DNA of 62,543 nucleotides, the filler included, from Choristocarpus tenellus KU-1152 (Eukaryota > Protista > Phaeophyceae), in assembly GCA_964200185.2 (NCBI GenBank). It is 9 parts of 9 records of this genome, joined end to end, with 100 filler letters (N's around TTAATTAATTAA, not from the genome) between each part and the next. Parts side by side here need not be neighbours in the genome. Positions count along the whole stretch, not along the records: positions 18,726 to 33,357 come from CAXNAD020001147.1; 8 more parts are not named here. The stretch is one strand, 5' to 3'. A program made the position numbers and the translations under genes. How positions within the stretch are numbered: position 1 is the first letter of the stretch; every line of letters begins with the position of its first letter. A model generated the notes under the pieces. It had not been told where the DNA came from and ran no database searches. It saw nothing but the letters and a program-made list of their open reading frames with translations. This document shows, in pieces, positions 18,517-33,782 of the stretch.

Positions 18517-19347
18517 GTAAGAGTAGCAAAATACATGGTAGAATTACATTTGTGATCCTTTTTTTTTGTTAGCCTATTGTTTCAGTAGTGGGATGTTATT
18601 TGCTGTGGAGGTGATGTTAGACGGGNNNNNNNNNNNNNNNNNNNNNNNNNNNNNNNNNNNNNNNNNNNNTTAATTAATTAANNNNNNNNNNNNNNNNNNN
18701 NNNNNNNNNNNNNNNNNNNNNNNNNCCTGCACCATCCTCAATTTTGAGAAAGACCTGTTTTTGGAAGGTGTCTTTCACACCACCCTCCATTTCTTTTCTA
18801 TCCTTACCAAAACTCAGCGTACCATATGTATTCTTGAAATCCCCCTCACGTTCACAATTGTCAGATTGCTTATAAATCTTCCCCCTTTTTGCTTGGAAAG
18901 AAAAATGAAAATGAGTTCGATTGTCCTCAAGAACAAACTGCGAAAAAGGTGGTGGGATCTGTGATAATGGATAGGAGGAGGAAACACTTTACGAGATATT
19001 TGTTTCTGTGAAACAAGAATTGGTGGAACAACTTAGGACAGTTGGCGGAATAAACCATCAGAATTGTTGAAAAGACCGATGTAGAGTTGGAGGAAAGGTC
19101 AATGCCAATCAGCGATATCAATTATATTATTCTAGGAACCGTGCCAGGATTGGTCCGACTTCGTACTTCAACATTAATGAAGTAACTCCTTGCAAAACAG
19201 CTGGACTGGTCTCGAAGCTCTTCATATCAAGTCACCGATCACAATACACTATCTGTCCTATATTAGTTCTCCAATCCCCGCAATGTTGCGTAATCACAGA
19301 CTCTCAGTCCATAAACGCTATTGTCTAGAATCCACAGTGGTGGGGGC

Positions 19348-22300
19348 ATGATGACAACCGAGGTAAGAAAGGAAAACCCCATGACCTTCTCTTGGTTTTG
19401 TGTACCTCCTTTACTCTGACCTGCGTGAGACATGTGACTTCTGGCTGAAACAGATCCTGTCGGAGGCTGCGAGGGCGATCGAAGCGGAAGAATCCTATGA
19501 AGTCCTCGGCCTACGATCGGGGGAAGCTAGGGCAGCCGGCGGCGAAGTCGTGCTGGAGGTTGCAGTACCGGCCACGATTGATGCAGTTAATGCGACCTTA
19601 CTGACACCAGTGCTTGGCACGGTGAAGAGACTGCTCGATACTATGAAAGGAGCCGCAGTGAAACGGAAAGAGGTAGTAGAGCTGGTTCATTTATGCGTGG
19701 CAATAGCAAGGTGCTTGATCAAGGGAGCGGAAATCAAATCAATGCCTCCGTCGATTAAGTTGGCTCTGGAGGAAATCAAGGATGAAGTGGAAGAAGTGGC
19801 TAGATTTGCCCAGACTTACGGTACGCAACGAAGATGCTGCCCACGGCTCTGCCTCCACTCGCATTACCTCGATACCGCCGCAAATCACAAGCAGAACTTA
19901 GAGAGCTTTCTTGACGCGATCGTGGCCAGGTTCGAGGTTGAGAACTACAGGGTCGTGACAGATGTTCCAGATTCGATCCAATCGAACGTTCCCAACCGTC
20001 CAGGCAGACTGGCAAATGTTCCTTCCTGGGCACCACTCCTCCCTAAAACATATGTTAAGCGGAATTCTCTGGCAGAACGAGTAATCCTGGACCTTAACAA
20101 CCCTGAGCACTCCGAGCCGCACTTTCTTTTAGGTATGGGAGGTGGAGGCAAGACTCTCCTGGCGTCCTATGTAGTGCGCGAAGAACGTGTGCGATCAATC
20201 TTCGAGGATGGCATTTTTTGGGTGCGTTCGCGACCAGAGGGAAAAGAATACCTTCGCAAGCTTATGACAGGGTCAGCGTATGAGCTAGCCTCAGCTCATA
20301 CGAACAGCCCTCATCAGTGTCCTCGTGAGTTCTCTGGAACTGAAGAAGTTGCTCGGCACATGTCTGAGGTCCGTGAAAGAAACGGGTTGAGGTGCCTCAT
20401 CATCTTGGACGATGTGTGGGATATCGAGGTTGTGAATGCCTTTTTCGATACAGGCTTTCGTCTTCTGGTCACCACCCGCCAGAGGACTGTGATTTCTCCC
20501 AAGTTTGGTATGCCGCCTACTGAGGTTGGAAACATGGCGATGGATGAGGCGCTGGAGGTACTGGGTAAAGCAAGCCAAGCTGTTGGACCACTTCCGGAAG
20601 CTGAGGCCAAGCAGGTGAGGACGTCTCCTCTCCCCAGTTCAAATCTCAAAGGCAAAGCGAGGGCGGACTACTGGTTCGTGGATCCATTATGGCAATGAGT
20701 GAGACTCTTCCCTGATTCGGATACACAATTAACCTGTTGTGTATGGGTTTTTCTTGTAGAAGGAACTGAGGAGAAATTGAGTCTATATGCAATACCTCTA
20801 CTTTCAAACACTTGGGGGTAGTTATTTCTGTGTGAGGTTTCACTGTGCAGTATGGAGCACTCTACCTTGAGACATTTTAGTAACAACAGGATAATGTGCT
20901 GATGGATGGGATATTGAATGGAAGAGTGGAACATTTTGTGGGATAGATGGTACATTACTCAGACACACCGGAGCTTCCAGCAAGGGCACATGGATCATAG
21001 TTCTCGTCTGCATGGTTCTTGATTAATTGTGAAATAATATTTTTCTGGGTAAAGCTAATAAACCCCCCACTACTTCATTACCAAAAACTAAAATCGTATC
21101 GGGAATTTGAGACAAACTATACGAAAGCTACATGTAAGCGAGCCCTGAGATTTTCTGAAAGGGAAGGAAGTCTGTTCATGTTAATGATGAGTGAAAGCAT
21201 CTAATTTGGAGGTCAATTTGGTCAATTTGACCTTTTGAGTTTTGAGTGCCTAGTTGAACTTTGTGCAATGTACAGCATGCTCACAATTGAAATGCAATTA
21301 ACCCCCCTTAGGAGGGTATGGTAGAAGAAGATCAGGTGTGAACACATTGTTAGCCGACAGCGGCCTCCACAACGCTCAAAATATACAAACCAATGGACAG
21401 TCATAGGTACCCTTAACTCAATACCCTCCATTTATGTGGTGTCATTGTGATTATTCCCACTCACATTATATGTGTATTGCAACCTACCATGATTTGTCTA
21501 GGGGACATGCACGAAATATCTTACAGACTAGTCAACCTTTTGGTGGGTAGTAATTGCTTGTGCTTTTCGATGTTTTTTGGGGGGGCCTTTTGCTCAGGGC
21601 ACTGTTAGCAATGTTTGGTGTGTTGATTTTGCATTACTCAATCCCTCATATGCTTAGTTCAATCCATCACCAACAACCCAAGAGCCCCTAGGGACCTAGG
21701 TCCTCGGTCTTAATGGGCAGGGAAGATCTAGTGACTGGTGAAAGTTGGTCACCAAGTTTTGACTTATTAATGAATTGCCTTACTATCTGCAGGTGGCTTG
21801 TGACTGCGGAATGAACCCTTTAGCCTTGAGCATGGCAGGCACGCTGGTAAAGGACCAACCGCTGTTGTCTACCTCTTGGCAAAGGGTACACATTGAACTG
21901 CAGAATGTATACACCAAGCTTCGGGGAAAAAAAGTGCCTCATGAGTTGACATATATTTTTTCTGTTTTGGATTTGAACTATAGCAATCTGCCAGAGGCCC
22001 AGAGGCTACAACTTCACTTCATGGCAATAATGGCGAAAGGAATCCCTGCGACATCAGAGATGCTAGCAAGCCTTTGGGACACGGTATGTGCAATTTATTT
22101 GTTATCTATGTTCTCAGGTACTAAGACACCTTGGTATTCTGGTATTAGATATATTGCTGTAATGTGTTTGTGTGTGTTATTGCTGACCTCAATACCTGTT
22201 TTCCACCCTAAACCTGTCACCCAGGATGTAACCAATGTACCAACTGGAACAAGGGTTTTGGTGGATCATTGCCTGCTGCAGGAGGTTGGTGTGGACTTTT

Positions 22301-25300
22301 GTCTCCATGATCTCGTGCTTGATTTCCTTGAGCTGACAATCAAGATGGATATCGCTAGTGTGGAAGATGCAATTTTGCGGCAGTCCCAGTACCTGGCCCG
22401 GTTGGGAGTTCTGTACAAGTATTCCAGTAAGAGTATCTGCGGTGGTCTGTATTCCCTCATTGCCCTGTGGAATGCAGTAAAGAAATATGATAAAGGGCTC
22501 CAGGTGGAAGTACACTACATGGAGAATCTTGAGGGTGTGACTGATCAAGACCACTGGAATCGAGCTGGCCAACTGCTTAGTGTCATGGTGAGATTTTCAC
22601 TTCGATGCAGAGAATGAATGAATCCACCCATAAGAGGCAGCAACATCCACTTGCTTACAGTTTATTTTTCATGTTGATAACCTCCTGATTGCTGTATGCT
22701 CAAATTTTACACAGGACATTTTCTCAGGCGCTGAGACGATGCTCAGGAAGGCCCTGGACATCACAATAGGAAAGGAGGGGGAATCACAGGCAGTAGCAGA
22801 AGGACTCAGCTGGTTGACGTCTGTGCTTCAGAAACAGGTGAACAAGGTTGTGGGTTGCTTGTGTTCATTAGTGTGAGACTATTCGTGTGTCCTATCGATT
22901 GCCCTTGTCCCCAGGATGAGTAAAGGCTAGGGTAAACCATAATAGTACATGATGAGTAACATGGTATACATGAGCATCAATTATAACTCTGGATGTGAAG
23001 GGAAGTGTAGTAAAAGAATACCTACCGGTTGCGGGGAGTTCCTCTCTCAAGCATTCTTGATATGTTAGAAGCTATCACTTTAATGAACTGAATTGTGTCT
23101 ATATCCTGACCTGTTAGCGCTCATGACCAGAAACATTTCCTGTACGTTTTGTAAGTGTAACTCTATCAAGTACCACACCAGGTGGTTCCTATTCCTCAAA
23201 GGAAATCTCTTCCTGCTTCTGTCATAAACCACCAAAATATGATGTGGAAGTTGTCTTGGTACATTTACTTTAAGTCTCTAATTATTCCTCAACCAGTAAC
23301 AAGAACATTTTCCATCTCCTAGAGACATCCTCTCATGAATTATGTACCTGATCATTCCTACTTTAGATGGGTTGTGTAGTAGATATCTATATATATATAT
23401 ATATATTCATATCCACAAAGGATTGGTGAGGGATATTTGAATAGGCGGGAAGGAAGGAAAAGTAGCTTCTCAGGATTTGCTTCATGTATTGAATGCAAGA
23501 GATTGAGTAGCATGATTGTTCTTCGTCAGTATCCTATACAATCATGCAGGGTTTTCAAAAGGGAGGTGTGGCGTAGTTAACCTTTCTTCAAGTAGTTTCT
23601 TGACGTTATTCACAGCTATTTAACATACTCCAGACATGCAAATCTACTCTGTAACTTGATCAAACAGGACACAAGGAGTGCGACAAATTTCACCCATTCA
23701 CCACATAAGTTACCTCAAGTATGTCTGCATTATTGAAGATAAATGAATATTCAATATTGAAAATATATAAAATATAGGATACATATAGATCTGCAGAGCA
23801 TAAGGTTGCATTTGCATATAAGACGGATATAAGCACCAAAAACTTGTTGGTATGTACTGGTAAGATGCGTGCATGACAATTTGTATATTGTGTATCATCT
23901 CACACAATTCCTCTTTGGGTGATTATGTTGACCATCTGCCTGCCTACCTATGCATAGCTAGGGTGGTGAACTTGTGTATTCTGTATTGTTAGATTGTGTG
24001 TTGTTTTGGATTTGCTCCACTGACATTCCAATGCACTGTTCCCTCATAGGGCAATTTTGAGGAGGCCCGTCCATTGTACGAGAGATGTCTTGCAATTTGG
24101 GAGAAGGTGCTTGGGCCAGAGCACCCAGATGTGGCCAGATCTCTGAACAGCCTGGCTTCATTGCTCAAGCACCAGGTAAGGAATGTATATTCAGGGAGTG
24201 TTGTTGTGGCTATGTTGTTGGCGGTCACCGAATGTGAGACAATGGACATATTCCTGATGAAGTGGGATGTAGGCAGGTGTGTGCAGCATAGAGTTGATAA
24301 CGGACGGAAGAAGCATATGAATGCTTGTGAATGCGTTGTTGGAAATCCCCTTCTGTGAAGACAGTGTTGGTGTGTACTGGTAGGATGCGTGCATGAGAGT
24401 GTAGATACTGTAAAATATGTTGTGCTGACCTTCTTTGAGAGATGGTGTTTGTCATCGTCCTATTTATTTATAGGTTAGGGTGGTGAACTTGTGTATTTTG
24501 TATTGTTAGATTGTGTGTTGTTTTGGATTTGCTCCACTGACAGACAGTACAATGCACTGTTCCCTCACAGGGCAATTTTGAGGAGGCCCGTCCATTGTAC
24601 GAGAGGTCCCTTGCAATTTGGGAGAAGGTGCTTGGACCAGAGCACCCAGATGTGGCCAGCTCTCTGAACAACCTGGCTTCATTGCTCAAGGACCAGGTAA
24701 GGAATGTACATTCAGGGAGTGTTGTTGTGGCTGTGTTGTTGGCGGTCACGGAATGTGAGACAATGGACATATTCCTGATGAAGTGGGATGTAGGCAGGTG
24801 TGTGCAGCACAGAGTTGATAATGGACGGAAGAAGCATATGAACGCTTGTGAATGCGTTGTTGGAAATCCCCTTCTGTGAAGACAGTGTTGGTGTGTACTG
24901 GTAGGATTCGTGCATGAGAGTGTAGATACTGTAAAATATGTTGTGCTGACCCTCTTTGAGAGATGGTGTTGGCCATCGTCCTATTTATTTATAGATAGGG
25001 TGGTGAACTTGTGTATTTTGTATTGTTAGATTGTGTGTTGTTTTGGATTTGCTCCACAGACAGTCCAATGCACTGTTCCCTCACAGGGCAATTTTGAGGA
25101 GGCCCGTCCATTGTACGAGAGATCTCGTGCAATTTGGGAGAAGGTGCTTGGGCCAGAGCAACCAGATGTGGCCTGATCTCTGAACAACCTGGCTTCATTG
25201 CTCCAGCACCAGGTAAGGAATGTATATTCAGGGAGTGTTGTTGTGATTGTGTTGTTGGCGGTCACCGAATGTGAGACAATGGACATATTCCTGATGAAGT

Positions 25301-26051
25301 GGGATGTAAGGCAGGTGTGTGCAGTACAGAGTTGATAATGGAAGGAAGAAGCATATGAATGCTTGTGAACGTGTTGGAAGAGTACAACCTTGATATTCAC
25401 TAGTATGGTGTGTGCTTGTGCGTTTGCGCAATTTATATGATTTGCTTTAATGCCAAACATATCTGGTGGCAGATAGAGTTTATTTGGCTGTATCTGTTGG
25501 TTTTCTTGCGGTGTGTTTTAAGTCTAGGTCATATGGGCACACTATTTTTTGGTTCTCTTTCATGTTGTTGATGATCGTTTCTTGAACAGTCGATTTTTTG
25601 TTGTAGTGTTGTTTGGATACGTTGCTATGCTATGGTAATACTCTGGGAGGATTACTTGATCAAATATCTGAGATGTGCAGGTGCACCATGTAAGTTTTTT
25701 TGTGTCACAGTGATTCAAATATGGTGCTTGTGAAGGAGGTTGCCACAAAATGCAGTAATTGAGCTTTATGGTGATATTGTGTAATTGGGGTTGTTACTGA
25801 CAATATTAGTAGTTCTCATTGCTACCCCGAAGCTTCCCATGAATGTGCAGACTAACGTAATGGTCTTTATAGTACACCAGTAACAGAGGGAGTGTTTTGC
25901 AGTTCTCTCTGTTCTTAGTCACCCACTTCTCTATCCTCTTTCCCTCATCTTACAGGGCAAACCACATGAGGCCTATGCCCTCTTCTTGCGTGCACAAGTG
26001 GTCTTGAACGAGGCTCCTGGTCCTGAAAATACACATAGAGAGATTGTTTGA
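19348..26051 (+). CDS. NLR-like protein: MLKL/RPW8-like four-helix N-terminal domain + NB-ARC + exon-encoded 42-aa TPRs
   Basis: Exons 19348-19362, 19454-20614, 21793-22083, 22225-22587, 22715-22837, 24050-24175, 24571-24696, 25087-25212 (contains in-frame TGA) and 25956-26051, all phase 0. Motifs: Walker A GMGGGGKT, Walker [25 protein letters not shown]-like CGMNPLAL and MHD-like LHDLV. TPRs read [36 protein letters not shown]. Confidence 0.92.
23844..25375 (+). repeat. Tandem array of three ~520-bp intron+TPR-exon cassettes
   Basis: Exon starts at 24050, 24571 and 25087 give periods of 521 and 516. The flanking introns are near-identical between units. Confidence 0.97.
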
Positions 26052-29000
26052 CAAAGGCTGGAGAATATGTAATGGTAGGATTTGGCAAGCCCTACGACTA
26101 AGTAAGAGAGTCAAGGGACCTCCTTCGTTACTGCATTTTGTTTCGTGTGGTAAGCTTGCTGTTATGTGCGATGAGCAGTAGATCAAGTGGGATTGGACAG
26201 GGTTGACAAAATATTGTGGGGTTGGGCTTGCAGTAACACTGATTTTTTTTTGCATTTTGAACTTTCAAATGTATTTTTGGCGACATTTCTCAAATATCTA
26301 CCTCTATTCACACAACATCTGTGAACTAGAGTCCCCTGAGAATGCCAACACTGCTATCCAGAGAGGGCACACGCAAGTGTGACATTTTATTGGTCTTTCT
26401 GGTCAAGATGTATTAAAACCTTTGAAGGCTGGAGGGTTCATGCACTCGTGCTATCTAAAAGAAAACTGAAGTCAACACAGTGAAACATCCTACAGCTAGA
26501 TCCTTGCATGCAACATTCCCATGTGGAACTTATCCAGGATTCTTACTATTATCTTGGGTACATGTTGGAACGATATGATAGCATATGGTAGAGTGATGAA
26601 CTTCCAGGGCATCCCATGCCAGGAACATACGTGTTATTCCATCACACATTTGAAGCTTGGAAGTAGGGATTGGCAATAGTTTGGTGGCTTGATATTTTTA
26701 TGACATCTTGGAGATTTCTGCCAATCGGATATTGGGGAGGTCGACAGGTCTGCATACCTGAAAAAGATGTATGTGACATTATGGCTAAATACATCTTATG
26801 TTGTTTGTTTATTTTTCAGAATACGATACTAGCGCCTTCCTTCACCAGTTTATATATTTTAATGCCCGCAGACATTTTTCAGATGTTGTCATAGGGGGGA
26901 TAAGAAGGATCGCAGCACTTCTATCTACTCCTCTGATTCGTACATATTCTACCCTCTGTATTGTGTTTTCCCCCTCTGAATAATGCTGGGTCTTAGATCG
27001 TTGGAAGAAATGTTTGAATGGGAGTTGGAAGAGCAGAATTGACATACAAGAAGGTGAGGGGAACCAAGACTGTCTGTCTCCTCCCAAGTATTGTACACAC
27101 ATCGTGTACCATTCATCATGTAGTTCTCGTTTTATTCCCACTGATATTTGCACATTCGTGCAGGAAAGAGAGAAGCAACATACAAGAGAACAGATAGACT
27201 GTTCATCATAGTGCTTGGATATCTTGAATAGTTTAATCGGATGTATCATGCACAGATCAGTGACTAGTAGTTACCTGACTCAGCAATTCGTCCTTGTGAC
27301 GTTTGTGGACTCTTTCCGTTCATCCACTATTCCCCGCTGAATTGGGCTGGTCCTCCAAATGAAAGGTTGTTCTCTCCTCTCTCTGTTGCCTTCATATATG
27401 TTTTGAAGCCTTTGTTGTAGGTAAGTATCAACAGCATTCAAATCATCACATAAATATTTTTATATGCCTGATCTACTCGCACGTAGACGTTTAGGATGCT
27501 CATATTGGTATAAATCATTTTAGTGTTCTACGTAATTTTTGTTTGATCTCGGGTTTTCTTTCCTATTTTCTCGAGGGGTGAAGCCTGATATAAGAATATA
27601 TATATATATATATTGTTCAATCTAAATCTCTGCAATGTGCAAGGTCAGATTGTACCATGGATTTGTGATAAGCAAATGTTTTTTACAGTCCTCCTCTGCT
27701 TGGCATTACTCGGAACGAATACAGGGAAATTATGTTTGTGACAAGATCTACCACAGGTAGACCAGCAACTCCTGCACCAATTATAGATATACAACCTTTG
27801 TTTCACCCAAGGTTTCTATAGTAGCGTTTACTTTCCAATATATACAGGGCCTTCTGGGAGGGGCTGTGGTCCCCTCATACGTTCCATGTTGAGGCGAGTG
27901 ATAATTACAATTACTTCTTGGCTACCCAATATAATATAAAAATAAAGAGTTTAAATGTGTCGTACCCCTCAATGTTCGGTAAAATCAAATGTCCCACGTT
28001 TATTTGACATGTCCCGGTCCGTGTCCGCCGAGCAGACCATGTCAAACATTTTCTACCTTGTCGGGACCATCCGACCATGTACAACCAGATTCGAACATGG
28101 CTATGTCCATTGCTATCGAGAGTTTCAAGTTGACTGGGCAGAGACACACCCTGGGGCCATATGGCCGACAGTGGACATGTTAACTGCCTGGCCCAGTGGA
28201 AACCCTTGTTATATTGCCTGGATGATTAACACAAAAGGGGATCCCATATCTAGAGAATTGTCAGTATAATATTTCTTTGAAAAACTTGCTGCTTTCCAAA
28301 CATCATGACTAGAAATGCTCAATGTATATACAAAATGCAGTTGACTTTAATTTCTTCTTAATACACAGGATCTCTTGAATTTAGAGTCGCTCATTGAATC
28401 CCAGAGTGACCTTTCCTAGGAATGGAGTATTTTTGCCCATACTGATCAGTGTGAGGGGGACAAATTGGAATCTTCTCATGCGCAGTGTGCTTTTTTACTG
28501 GTGAGAGAACCTTCATGAAATGCGGTCCAGTCTACCACCTTGTGCGCGAGCGCGCGGATTTTTTGCATTTCAAGGTCAACAAAAAGCACTGATATTTCTT
28601 GTGGACCTACTGTACTAGCCTCACTCTCTTGTTGAGACACCTAACATTAACCTAGATGCTAAACAAATTATCTTCCTATTTCGAAACAACCCCAATGCTA
28701 TAAAAAAATCAACACAACTATAATCTTTCTAAAAAGATTACGTTCAGGGACAAAACACCTGCTCCAGTTCTCAAAAACGTCATTCACTAAGTTCGATGGT
28801 TTTCTCTATATTAAAGATGTCAAAGAGTTTAGAAATAGTTCCAAAAACTACTTGGTGGCTAATGAGGCGTTGTGGTGGTGTGTTTGTCCTATATGTTCAA
28901 GGTAAACCGCAATGTCGTGAGGGGGTGAACAATACGGAACATGAGGACAGTCACTTTCATGTTTTGCTTTCCTCACGAATTCTGGATTAACATTCATTAT

Positions 29001-29680
29001 TCTTTATTTGCATTCCACCTAATCTACCCCTCTGTTGTAACACCACTTGTGACCAACCAGCGCCGTCCGTCCCTGTGTCACTGACTTCCAGGCACCAGCC
29101 TATCCCGTCATCAACCAGTGCGAACCCCTTTCGCCACTGATTTACGGAACACCAACCATATGAAGGCGTGGAATGCAGTTAATCTAGCCTTCCGAACCGT
29201 TTCTATCTTAGGCCCTATTAAGGCAATGTGGTGGTGTGTTTTTCGATGATGGGGGTGAATAATACTGAATATGAGAATAGTGACAGACCAGTTTTGGAAG
29301 TATTTCTAAACTCGTTGACATCTTAAATATGGGGAAAACAATGGTTTTAGTCCTTAAAGAGGCTTAAGAACTAGACCAAGTCTTTGTTCGTTGCTCAACG
29401 TGATCTTTTTTTTGTATGACGATATTTGTGTTGATTTTTCTATAGTTGAAGAATCAATACCACCACTTACTAGTACAACTGTTTTTTTCATACAATTCTC
29501 CCTTAAAATCGAACAAATCTATTCTAAGCTCTTTGTGTATATGAGAATATACACCATAACCGTTATTAATTTCTGGATCAACTGCCATATTTTTTTTTAT
29601 TCTTAATTTCTGAACTATGCTCATCCCTTAAGTACCATATTTGTTTTACCAAGATCTGGAATTTCTGAATATCCTGACCA

Positions 29681-31682
29681 ATGATTGAGTGTGAGTCTGA
29701 TGGTGAGGTTCCAGACGGTTTGCACAAGGTGATTTATGTAAGGGGTATCTATGTCCCACAAGGATTAACTGGACCTATTCTCCCCCTACCCCCCCTTCAC
29801 CAGTTGCACATACTCCAGAGTAAGTGATATTTTACACAGAACACCCAATATCTGCACCACAACATTGTCCTTGGTAGTGATATTGCGCAGTGGGAGTGCA
29901 ATGCAACCTGTATGCTTGACCCACGAAAACGTACGCCCTTTCTCCATCCCTTTCTCCATCCCTTTCTCCATCCCTCCTTCTCCTCCCACCCCTCCCGCTG
30001 ACTCTGTGATGATCGCTATAATACACCCACTCGATTGTCTACTATACGGGGTTTTGGAGGGGTTTCCTAATAGGTGGGGGTTCGGTCTCCCTTGAAAGTC
30101 CATGGGTACTGGGGACAACCCACCAAAAGCCTGGAGGCGTTTTGTGCCCTCCTTCTATCGTCCAGCTCAACAACACCATAACCGCCTTCCAATACAGTAG
30201 AAAACCAGGATAAACCAACACCTGCAGTGACTACCAATGTACAAGTGGAGGAAAAGGTGCAGATGGCAATAGCACCTAACCCTACTTCCACAGTTTCTGC
30301 TGCTGAGGATGCAGCTGGGGTTTCACCATCACTGAAGGGTGTTGTTGAGGATGGTGAGGACATTGGTGATGTTGATTGGTCTGTTGCGTTTGTTAGGATG
30401 AGGGATGAAGGGTTTTCGCACATTGGAGAGCTTTTCATTGTGGGCGGATTAAGGACATTCTCATCATTGGAGGAAGGAACCACTATCCTCGAGTGAGCAA
30501 ACATGCACATAGCAATGATGTAATGCGGTATAGTGCCATGTCTAGTCATGTGAAAGCTGTGTGAGTGTTTGTGTGTTGGGAACCTTGTACAATGAGGTCA
30601 AGTGCCATAGTATGGTTTGGCACAACCTGTAGAGCTCTACTCATTAGTGGAATGCCAGGGGGGAGAGGGGGGAAGGAAGCACTGGCAACCTTCTTTTTGT
30701 TACCTTCAAGCAAAAAAAATTATCCAAGTCTTTTAAGGTGTTTATATATGTGTGCATGTAGAGGGAGCGAGCATGTCCGTGTGTACGACTGGCAATAGTT
30801 CTGTGAGGCATCATCCTTCGGAGCGATAGGAAGGGTCAAGTGTGTACTGCAGAAGCGAGGGGATGAGCATTCGAGGCCTACTTTTGATTACAATAGAATG
30901 TTTTGATCAAGTACGCCGGGAGTATATTTGATTCAGCTGACCCAAGTAGTTTTGTAGTTAATTTCAGTTTCACAAGGGTTAGGGTTGCAGTATGTGGTAA
31001 CGGTCAGAGTGTGTCAAGGTCCTTGTGCTGGTTTTTGAGATGTGCTGTGATTAAAGGGTTAATGTGATGTTTGTGTAAAGGACGGTGTTTCTGACAAGAA
31101 AGCAGTGTTGTAGCCACATCATGGCTCATGGGGTCTACTGTATGACGTGGAGTTTATCACTTTCCTCTGTACGGGTTTGGTGACAGTTACGTTGCTGATA
31201 CTGCTGATAAAATTCATGCCGAAATTGAGGTGGTCGGTGTAGTGAATTTGATTTATTTCGACTGAGTGTATCTTGTGTACTCATGTTTATGTTTTGTGCT
31301 TGTCTTGAAATTAAGTTGTTTTTTTTCAAGTAGTGTATGTGAATGTCACGCTTCGGAGCTATACCTGTCAAGTCGTGAGACGAACTGGAATACAAATTAA
31401 GTGTTACGCTATTTTTTGTTTCAAGTATTAATGAGTGGAGGCTTGAAGTATCTTAGCAGTTACTTTTTGGAAGTTTTGTGCCCTACGAGGATAATCCATA
31501 TGCCATGTACGTTTTGTTTGCTGGGTTTTGTTGACAGATGTTGTCCACCGGAAGCTCATGGTATTATCCAAAGCATTTACTACTACGCACACATCACAGT
31601 GTATACTCCCCTAGGATATGCTCCATATTTTTGAAAACACATATAGTGTATGTGTATCAAGTATACTCTTGTCCGTGCTCCA

Positions 31683-31718
<36 letters not shown>

Positions 31719-32756
31719 GTCTCCCATCCCGTATTAAAAACAAAAAAGGATAATAAAAAAATGGGGTTTGTATCAATTTGGAAATACAAATATCATTCCT
31801 TCCCACCCTCCCGTACCCCCCCCTCGCAACGTTTAATAAAACAGGACATTGAAAGGACTCCAGAACACGGACGCAATTCGTCACTTAGACTGGGCTGTAA
31901 CACTGCCTTCAGTGTACCTGGACCAGGGGCAAGCGCAAGAGAGGACCTGGTGCTTGCAGTGGAGCTTCATGAAGACCAGGTGGGGTTACAGCTAGGGTGA
32001 GGATGACATAATAGGCTACAGGTCTGTGAGGGATCCTTGACTACAGGACTGTAAGGGTACTTTGGTCTCAGGGCTAAGTCTCAGGGCTATGGGGCTGTGT
32101 GACTTGGGGGATAGGGCTAGGGGGTTGGTTGCGTGTAATGATTAGACTCTGAAGCAACATGTTCCTTTAGGCCTTTCATACATACATACATATCGGTATA
32201 GGAAGAAATTTTATTTATGGAAATACATTAATTGGATTGAAATACCCTATGATACACAAGATAGTAGTAGTGCTCTGTAAGGGTTAGGGTTGAGGTGCTC
32301 CATATTTTCAATGGTATAATAGGTGTATGCATTATTCTGGGAACAGCATGCACATACTATGTAAAAAAACGTCATTTTTTTCGTCATATTTCTTTTTGCA
32401 CTCTCTAAACGGTTGGAAGGCGATGGAGTCTCAAATGAGATCAATTACAATGACAGGATTACCATTACTGTCTGTCCAACACTGTTGTTGTACTACCTCT
32501 ATGATTGGAGCAAGACGCTTAGATAGAAAGTAGTCCTTCACCCTTTTTTTATTCGAAAACTGTTGTGTACCTGAAGTGGTTCTATGCTTCTTTCTTTTTT
32601 AACCCCTACAAATATCCCTATTCACCACCCCTCCTCCCCGTCTGGGTGATGTGACCTTATCTCATCTGCTTCCAAAGCATCTTACAGAGCCTGAAAAGAG
32701 ATGGAACTGATGGAGGTGACGCAGTGGATCCAGACAAGCCTTTCTATGATCTGTGA
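29681..32756 (+). CDS. Putative spliced acidic protein of unknown function (may be a pseudogene)
   Basis: GT-AG exons 29681-29728, 29804-29819, 30198-30492, 31913-31979 and 32688-32756 join with matching phases (0,1,2,0). Product: MIECESDGEVPDGLHKLHILQIENQDK...DVDWSVAFVRMRDEGFSHIGELF...EDLVLAVELHEDQ...PFYDL*. No family recognised. Confidence 0.4.
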
Positions 32757-33274
32757 CTCGCGTCCATGTCCGCTGAACAGTTCAGTGGACTCCTGCCACA
32801 GGGAGGTTTGCTGGGAAGATGGAGGGGGGGATGGGAGCGGATTTTTTATTAATGTGTTTCTTTTTAATATCTTGTTACCCTGGGGCAAAGTATTGCTCTC
32901 TGCGGGAAGACACACGTATCCATGGAAGTATGGGTGTAAGCGTTGAGGAATTTTCGATTAAATCAAATATGCTAGAAAAAGGTGTCATTCTAGATGGTGT
33001 TGGTATATTATGTCCAGGCTTGTGAAAGGTACGTATGTGGAATGGTGAGAGTTGATGAGGTTGGAGTTAGGGGTGCTACTACCAAGATTGATGGGATTGG
33101 GAGGCCAGTACGTCTTTTACTGCCATTTGTTCCCTTTCAAAAAGTACTGTGGGTGTCATATGGACCGATATGATTGTAGTTGTACTTCTTATGCCCATCA
33201 AATTGGGTTTACTGACCTCTAAAGACTCCGCAAAGGTGTTAGTTGGATCTCTTGTCCTGCTTCCCCTTACCCTA

Positions 33275-33308
<34 letters not shown>

Positions 33309-33782
33309 TCAAGCCTTCGTCTTCCTTTCATCTCCCTCCCCCCCCCCACACTCTTTTNNNNNNNNNNNNNNNNNNNNNNNNNNNNNNNNNNNNNNNNNNN
33401 NTTAATTAATTAANNNNNNNNNNNNNNNNNNNNNNNNNNNNNNNNNNNNNNNNNNNNCACTGGTGGATTATGTGGTAGGGTAGAGAGCCAGTGACAGATA
33501 TATTATATGTACTGACTCATAGTGTTGATTGGTTTTATATCATGTTCAAGATACACTTCCTATAGTTAAGATAAGTAATTCATAGTAAATTAGTGTGGGC
33601 GATTACAAACCCCACACTATAGAGTAATGATGGTAGTTAAGGATAGAGTCTCACCCACGAGCTCAGTCAGCGGAATCGAGGCCACAATGGCCCTTGTATT
33701 ACTAACATTGTTCATCTATATCAAGCTGTTTTTTGTCCTTCATTAAAGCACCATAAAAGCCGCGGGTCCAGTGTGGGATAGT

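Follow-up and report, generated by a model that had tools for sequence, protein, structure and literature searches.

Introduction

Brown algae evolved complex multicellularity independently, and since 2012 their NB-ARC-TPR genes have counted as candidate immune receptors; we know of nothing, however, on how the encoded proteins would signal. In Ectocarpus, as far as the accessible text of the family description goes, these genes contain, after NB-ARC, phase-0 TPR exons of 42 amino acids (aa), which are duplicated in tandem together with an intron, and the coding strand also carries TPR exons that have been inactivated (Zambounis et al. 2012, PMC3341825); neither the NB-ARC-TPR family nor the shuffling of its exons is new (PMC3341825; bioRxiv 10.1101/2024.02.19.579948). 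Fungal NLRs with HeLo or HeLo-like N-domains also include NB-ARC-TPR architectures (PMC4986451, PMC10197012). In full-text literature searches brown-algal NB-ARC proteins were not linked to MLKL, RPW8, HeLo or a four-helix bundle, although absence there is not proof. Here we describe an NB-ARC-TPR gene of the brown alga Choristocarpus tenellus and the domain that precedes its NB-ARC part, hereafter the N-domain. The window, that is, the whole stretch of DNA analysed, is 62,543 nucleotides long with its filler, and positions 18726-33357 of it, where the gene lies, are one whole 14,632-bp C. tenellus contig, CAXNAD020001147.1.

The explanation that we favour is that the N-domain is a brown-alga-specific domain of NB-ARC-TPR proteins whose fold, an antiparallel bundle of four helices, belongs in one class with the MLKL N-domain and the plant RPW8/CC-R/CC domains, and we give this explanation about an even chance of being right. 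Its parts differ in strength. An MLKL/CC-class four-helix bundle is well supported as a predicted fold and by architectural position, the N-domain occupying the place that the signalling or executioner domain has in plant and fungal NLRs. Common ancestry with MLKL/RPW8/CC is plausible but unproven, and a specific link to HeLo is unsupported.

Results

A conserved, predicted four-helix domain precedes the NB-ARC domain

An open reading frame on the + strand spans 19385-20695 and includes the N-domain followed by NB-ARC, with 19454-20047 (+) coding for the ~200-aa region that precedes the NB-ARC domain. The two protein strings on which a first-pass annotation of this DNA had based its proposal of a four-helix effector domain were located in frame 19454+3n (+), at 19604-19717 and 19760-19921; part of what was read there lacks an in-frame ATG, as the first one (19643) falls inside the quoted sequence. 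A whole-library HMMER search with the N-domain at E ≤ 1e-3 defined the homologue set and yielded 37 proteins, 16 of them at E ≤ 1e-10. One of them comes from the window itself (public model CAM9263687.1, listed as P0001; E 3e-82), and the other 36 are relatives with E values from 8.6e-36 to 4.7e-4. The organisms named among ten proteins looked up were C. tenellus itself, Hapterophycus canaliculatus and Pylaiella littoralis. Since 37 proteins were found in this way, and since a colinear contig of RNA type is spliced downstream at GT..AG sites (see below), the stretch is not a chance open reading frame. Word-index protein searches were far less productive, giving zero matches with exon 1 (region 1-200) and two matches only, P0028 and P0038, with the family alignment A2.

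Alignment A2 revealed the conserved motifs (W)YE.LGL in the leader, AAN...L.PV....K.L..AV.GAA in helix alpha1, EL..YCV.I.RC, a Cys-rich loop and HK.KL...LD. A J-domain, an idea that came from the 'YEVLGL' motif, was dropped, as no HPD motif follows and no DnaJ Pfam match was obtained. Also kept across the family were the CC doublet of the Cys-rich alpha3-alpha4 loop and the two Cys residues of alpha2 (YCV.I.RC), which is unusual in a cytosolic helical bundle; possible roles of these residues may be acylation, redox chemistry or metal binding.

When AlphaFold2 (AF2) was run with alignment A2, the model contained four helices (residues 44-66, 72-94, 99-124 and 134-177), with a mean predicted local distance difference test score (pLDDT) of 79.8, a predicted template modelling score of 0.67 and core blocks at 88-96. 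All four helices are amphipathic, with best 18-residue hydrophobic moments of 0.48-0.60, and four helices were predicted both with and without the alignment. The single-sequence AF2 model was unusable (pLDDT 43.6), and the confidence in the fold therefore comes from the alignment. Thus, the four-helix region proposed in the first-pass annotation was recovered by its strings, by the amphipathic helices of the model and by its 36 relatives; of the AlphaFold and Foldseek check suggested there, the modelling half gave a four-helix bundle as monomer with core pLDDT of ~90, and the Foldseek half gave nothing at E ≤ 1e-3. What is supported, as a model, is that this STAND NB-ARC-TPR protein carries, immediately before its NB-ARC, a conserved bundle of four helices that folds separately.

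Pfam detected NB-ARC in 24 of the 37 listed proteins, and TIR in four others (P0021, P0026, P0028 and P0032), which are 266-290 aa long, contain no NB-ARC and match TIR_2 at E 5e-16 to 1e-13. Because it occurs with NB-ARC in those 24 proteins and with TIR instead in these four, the N-domain is a portable module, and the TIR-fused relatives are a second architecture for it.

Resemblance to MLKL and plant CC domains

In a Pfam scan of all 37 N-domains, MLKL_N was the only recurrent family, matching three members at 16-17 bits (E 1.4e-3 to 7e-3). RPW8 occurred once, in P0036 (E 1.9e-4, 21.6 bits), a protein that matched MLKL_N as well (E 6.4e-3), and P0011 matched MLKL_N at E 7e-3. Two of the member-to-MLKL_N alignments, compared by hand, share their register, with the query residue equal to the profile position plus 46 to 48. 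In two language-model searches, no named family other than MLKL_N recurred; its clusters made up 7 of 30 and 8 of 30 hits with scores of 0.95 and 0.93, respectively.

For structure comparison, the model was aligned to each of 48,161 representative chains, and six MLKL/CC-type representatives were included in the top 30. In this search, Arabidopsis AtMLKL3 (6ka4) reached a Z of 10.5 over 123 aa at 3.2 Å and the human MLKL N-terminal domain (6ux8) a Z of 10.5 over 116 aa at 2.6 Å, followed by mouse MLKL (4btf, 9.8), MLA13 CC (8.8), NRG1.1 CC-R (8.7) and Rx CC (8.2). Realignment of the top Foldseek chains gave AtMLKL2 (6lba) as the best natural chain (Z 10.8), with NRG1.1 at 9.9, human MLKL at 9.4 and NRC3 at 9.0. 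Overall, the best natural matches, those to MLKL and CC/CC-R domains, proceed helix for helix from target residue 1-2 along the whole domain (100-123 residues), with Z of 8.2-10.8 and a root mean square deviation (rmsd) of 2.5-3.9 Å; for the MLKL structures 6ux8, 4btf, 6ka4, 6lba and 6zvo the corresponding values are Z 9.4-10.8 and rmsd 2.5-3.2 Å over 98-123 residues. A shape search of the ESM Atlas had an Rx_N+NB-ARC cluster as its top row, with a template modelling (TM) score of 0.51, and contained a fungal cluster listed under PF17111 with a TM of 0.57 by target.

The NB-ARC core, the TPR cassette and the transcript

Three public runs were available, of which only X3 behaves as RNA, and expression and splicing were read from X3 contigs. 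The sole spliced protein analysed was the public model P0001, the exons being otherwise handled separately. A 2028-nt contig from X3, with a depth of 117, covers 19391-20614, 21793-22083, 22225-22587 and 22715-22837 and then enters a TPR exon, and all its joints are GT..AG when the contig is placed on the window; at the first joint, it is colinear over 19391-20610 and then linked by GT..AG to 21789/21793. The gene is transcribed and spliced, and every exon of it is phase 0, as checked at the splice sites.

The NB-ARC match (Pfam PF00931) begins at residue 207 (20072), directly after the bundle (residues 44-177), and has an E of 4e-13 when exon 1 is scanned by itself and of 1.9e-20 for the spliced P0001. 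TPR_12 matches P0001 at E 1.5e-55, which, in C. tenellus, bears out the description of the gene product as a stramenopile NB-ARC-TPR protein. The same is true of the intact STAND ATPase described in the first-pass annotation, since Walker A (P-loop GMGGGGKT), Walker B, the sensor-1 R, the GLPL-type GMNPLAL and the MHD-type LHD were all found.

The TPR cassette contains three 126-nt phase-0 exons in tandem exon-plus-intron units of ~520 bp (24019-25355) that are 83-99% identical, the second and third units being 95% and 83% identical to the first, with conserved splice sites. One X3 contig end links TPR exon 1 (24176) straight to the terminal exon at 25956, bypassing TPR exons 2 and 3, and a second X3 contig has the joint 24175->24571. 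Because a contig end passes from 24176 to 25956, the TPR exon with a nonsense codon (25087-25212) can be skipped, and these joints suggest that the TPR cassette exons are used alternatively. X3 also showed variant letters at 24124 and 24137 in the first TPR exon at high depth (207/470), probably because nearly identical TPR exons elsewhere, in other copies or loci, are expressed.

Translation start and completeness of the gene

In the RNA-supported exon, two ATGs lie upstream of M64 in other frames, at 19432 (ATG-TGA) and 19497 (35 codons). The public model begins at M64, at the end of alpha1, and as a consequence the leader and alpha1 are absent from it. Upstream of M64, 63 codons are open and are 40-45% identical to the relatives, while the window's leader is ~10 residues shorter than theirs ahead of alpha1 (alignment A2). 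The relatives P0005, P0029, P0017 and P0021 have an M exactly where the window reads LKQ, and for P0005 the DNA confirms this ATG and shows a stop codon in frame before it. For P0003 (locus L002), the 'M' is a GTG picked by the gene caller, and an ATG is absent at that point too.

At several loci the sequence before 'Q(V/I)L..AAR' is pyrimidine-rich and ends in CAG, as observed for the window (19385-19453), L002 (1426-1500) and the N-termini of P0002, P0007 and P0008. In several relatives, what precedes 'QVL' resembles a translated polypyrimidine tract plus CAG, which hints at a nearby 3' splice site, and the true 5' structure of the family may include an unannotated 5' exon or an intron in the 5' untranslated region. 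A candidate upstream mini-exon, ATGATGACAACCGAG followed by gtaaga (19348-19362), would supply a start if spliced to the acceptor-like cag/ATC at 19454. It was rejected as the major form because the X3 contig follows the genome without a break over 19391-19453 and reaches no further than 19391, and because the depth upstream is ~5 compared with 117. Translation of the window gene could begin at M64, giving a product that lacks alpha1, at a non-AUG codon or in a minor upstream exon; the true start may be non-AUG or lie in an exon outside the contig coverage.

Alpha1 is the membrane-engaging helix in MLKL and CC domains. A product that starts at M64 lacks it and therefore could not act by an MLKL/CC-like membrane mechanism; such a product might represent a decaying, regulatory or non-AUG-initiated paralogue. 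The first-pass annotation regarded the locus as a complete single-gene receptor, which is doubtful, given the lack of an in-frame AUG before M64, a short TPR part and a nonsense codon in one of the TPR exons.

Weighing of alternative explanations

A number of results weigh against a kinship with MLKL, RPW8 and CC domains. The window N-domain itself has no Pfam match, and the matches of its relatives are all under the gathering score (27 bits for MLKL_N, PF22215; 30.4 bits for RPW8, PF05659). Family profiles A2 and A3 (the latter of 33 core domains) searched against PDB sequences reached mouse MLKL at E 0.3, level with designed coiled coils, and trimming the family profile to its core brought no improvement against the PDB; phmmer with the N-domain against the PDB returned nothing. 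HeLo (PF14479) or SesA was found neither in the first protein's table (E ≤ 10) nor among the 19 families matched by the 37 N-domains, and no Rx_N (PF18052) match was seen in the Pfam scan of these domains. The sequence-based and the structure-based alignment to mouse MLKL are offset by ~5 residues at the end of alpha4. Foldseek against the PDB gave no match at E ≤ 1e-3, a Z of 8-11 falls within the range that the alignment tool itself gives for unrelated helical bundles, and bundles other than MLKL score equally or higher, namely, GCP (including GCP4; 11.9 and 11.3), designed repeats (11.0) and Cbl-TKB (10.4). Superposability of the model on MLKL N-domains would thus hold at the fold level only, with Z not above the helical-bundle background. 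Fused to TIR, the same domain is not tied to NLRs, and it could instead serve as a module for targeting or interaction. For the window gene, it adds to these points that no ATG occurs in frame from the TGA at 19382-19384 until M64. A generic, lineage-specific four-helix adaptor for protein-protein contacts (homotypic recruitment, NB-ARC autoinhibition or partner docking), with no MLKL/RPW8/CC ancestry and no membrane activity, would fit Z scores no better than those of Cbl-TKB, GCP or designed bundles, the nonsignificant Foldseek and PDB profile searches and the failure to pass any curated Pfam threshold, and the N-domain precedes TIR in four small proteins as a portable interaction module would. 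We nevertheless consider such an adaptor unlikely. The only sub-threshold Pfam families of note are MLKL_N and RPW8, in agreeing registers, MLKL_N alone recurs by name in both language-model searches, the six MLKL/CC-type representatives in the top 30 chains are aligned from their own N-termini, and the architectural position is the one that these domains hold in plant and fungal NLRs. Of the likeness to MLKL, RPW8 and HeLo advanced in the first-pass annotation, the MLKL/CC fold matches and the sub-threshold MLKL_N/RPW8 matches of relatives stand, the domain itself has no Pfam match, and the HeLo part is unsupported. The stronger claim, that the domain is a true homologue of the MLKL/RPW8/CC executioners, carried by brown-algal NB-ARC-TPR receptors and small TIR proteins as an ancient eukaryotic cell-death module, is a tentative one that we rate somewhat short of probable.

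A different question is whether this locus still makes the domain. The window gene could be a decaying or N-terminally truncated paralogue that starts at M64 without alpha1, its domain being an ancestral relic in a family known for its rapid birth-and-death turnover. The ATG-less 5' part of exon 1 with its two out-of-frame ATGs is in line with this, and so are an RNA that is colinear over 19391-19453 with no upstream coding exon joined to it, the methionines of four relatives at the window's LKQ, the ~10 residues missing ahead of alpha1, the nonsense codon in TPR exon 25087-25212 and the high pseudogene rates reported in the accessible text on the family (PMC3341825). On the other hand, the 63 upstream codons have stayed open and similar to the relatives, the transcript is abundant in X3 (depth 117) and correctly spliced, and at least one contig end bypasses the nonsense exon, giving the proper terminal exon. 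Locus L002 (P0003) likewise has no ATG, the caller having used GTG, so that the true start may be non-AUG or located in an unsampled exon. Decay of the window gene is therefore possible but, in our estimate, somewhat short of probable.

Features of the locus and of the rest of the contig

The coordinates of the gene features are summarized in Table 1.

Table 1. Features of the C. tenellus NB-ARC-TPR gene, in positions of the window
Feature	Position	Strand	Details
Exon 1 (RNA-defined)	19391..20614	+	5' leader 19391-19453, N-domain, linker, first NB-ARC part; donor CAG/gtgagg
Conserved pre-bundle leader, residues 1-43	19454..19582	+	Short helix, (W)YE.LGL at 19496-19513, low-confidence segment; pLDDT 49-69; alignment A2
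Helix alpha1, residues 44-66	19583..19651	+	Predicted by AF2 with alignment; amphipathic, hydrophobic moment 0.49
First in-frame ATG, M64	19643..19645	+	A at -3; start of CAM9263687.1; at end of alpha1
Helix alpha2, residues 72-94	19667..19735	+	Best conserved motif of the family, EL..YCV.I.RC
Helix alpha3, residues 99-124	19748..19825	+	Followed by Cys-rich loop CCPRLC, 19835-19852
Helix alpha4, residues 134-177	19853..19984	+	Conserved HK.KL...LD
Linker to NB-ARC	19985..20071	+	Conserved LA.VP..AP.LP in first part (alignments A1, A2)
NB-ARC, first part	20072..20614	+	PF00931 E 4.3e-13; P-loop 20132-20155, Walker B 20396-20422, LLVTTR 20462-20479
Exon 2, NB-ARC second part	21793..22083	+	GMNPLAL 21808-21828; RNA joints; Pfam match ends near 21987 (P0001 residues 144-389)
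Exon 3, winged-helix and linker region	22225..22587	+	LHD (MHD-type motif) 22303-22311; RNA joints
Exon 4, 41-aa degenerate TPR-like	22715..22837	+	RNA joint; no Pfam match when scanned alone
TPR exon copy 1, 42 aa	24050..24175	+	TPR_10 E 4e-12; RNA joint 24175->24571; loose end 24176 to 25956
TPR exon copy 2, 42 aa	24571..24696	+	~520-bp tandem unit, 95% identical to copy 1
TPR exon copy 3, 42 aa	25087..25212	+	In-frame TGA 25174-25176; inactivated; public model ends here
Terminal coding exon GKPHEAYAL...REIV	25956..26051	+	Stop TGA 26049-26051; 26 loose X3 contig letters behind 24176 match from 25956

Intron 1 contains a 34-bp stretch (21287-21320) that is flanked by loose ends in each of the three runs and has raised depth in X1 and X3, in the manner of a short dispersed repeat with copies at other loci. 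Downstream of the gene, 29726-30725 has a higher G+C content (0.48) and open frames at 30182-30493 (+) and 30070-30597 (-), with a Pfam match at chance level only (E 0.06), and may be an exon of a neighbouring gene. The contig also contains an (AT)17 microsatellite (31685-31718) and, at its end, a run of 30 C (33276-33305).

Discussion

If the predicted bundle is of the MLKL/CC class, its mode of action can be pictured from its architecture. A ligand would be sensed by the TPR array and the autoinhibition of NB-ARC released; NB-ARC would then exchange nucleotide and oligomerise, bringing the N-terminal bundles together. By analogy to MLKL and the CC/CC-R resistosomes, the most likely place for the clustered bundles to signal would be a membrane. 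Pore formation and a cell-death function are, at this point, only what we infer from that analogy.

Should this hold, an MLKL/CC-class bundle would be the missing output module of the brown-algal NB-ARC-TPR receptors, and the design of an NLR plus a four-helix executioner would extend to a fourth major eukaryotic lineage. The NOD-driven clustering of a membrane-attacking bundle would then be common to animals, plants, fungi and stramenopiles, a proposition testable in Ectocarpus. The N-domain also offers a small, concrete object for membrane-damage and cell-death tests in kelp and Ectocarpus disease models, and the four-helix module may have a second use in the TIR-fused relatives.

Compared with the MLKL N-domain, the algal domain is likewise a (predicted) four-helix bundle of ~120-135 aa at the extreme N-terminus, with sub-threshold MLKL_N matches in relatives. 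It differs in what follows, NB-ARC-TPR (or TIR) in the alga versus brace helices and a pseudokinase in MLKL, and in its sequence, the identity being 8-16% and the algal protein having an extra conserved leader of ~43 aa with (W)YE.LGL before alpha1. Fungal HeLo and HeLo-like (HELL, SesA) NLRs share with the algal protein an N-terminal helical effector, a NOD module and TPRs diversified by recombination, whereas a HeLo/SesA sequence match is lacking and the sole link is the weak structural one to the PF17111-listed fungal cluster. The plant RPW8/CC-R domains (NRG1/ADR1; PF05659; 7l7v) and CC domains (Rx 4m70, MLA13 9fyc, NRC3 9ri9) resemble it in lying directly N-terminal of NB-ARC, in the modelled fold class (Z 8.2-9.9) and in the accompanying P-loop, GLPL-type and MHD-type (LHD) motifs; in contrast, the sensor is TPR in the alga and LRR in plants, and the host is a stramenopile, far from plants. 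In gene anatomy the locus corresponds to the Ectocarpus NB-ARC-TPR family, which, in the accessible text of its description, is the same gene family with the same anatomy as the window gene, inactivated TPR exons included, but which is presented there as NB-ARC and TPR only, with the N-terminal domain not described (PMC3341825); a search of later papers yielded no account of it either. Brown-algal NB-ARC-TPR genes were known before, and what this locus would add is an NLR with a four-helix N-terminal domain of putative signalling type in a new lineage.

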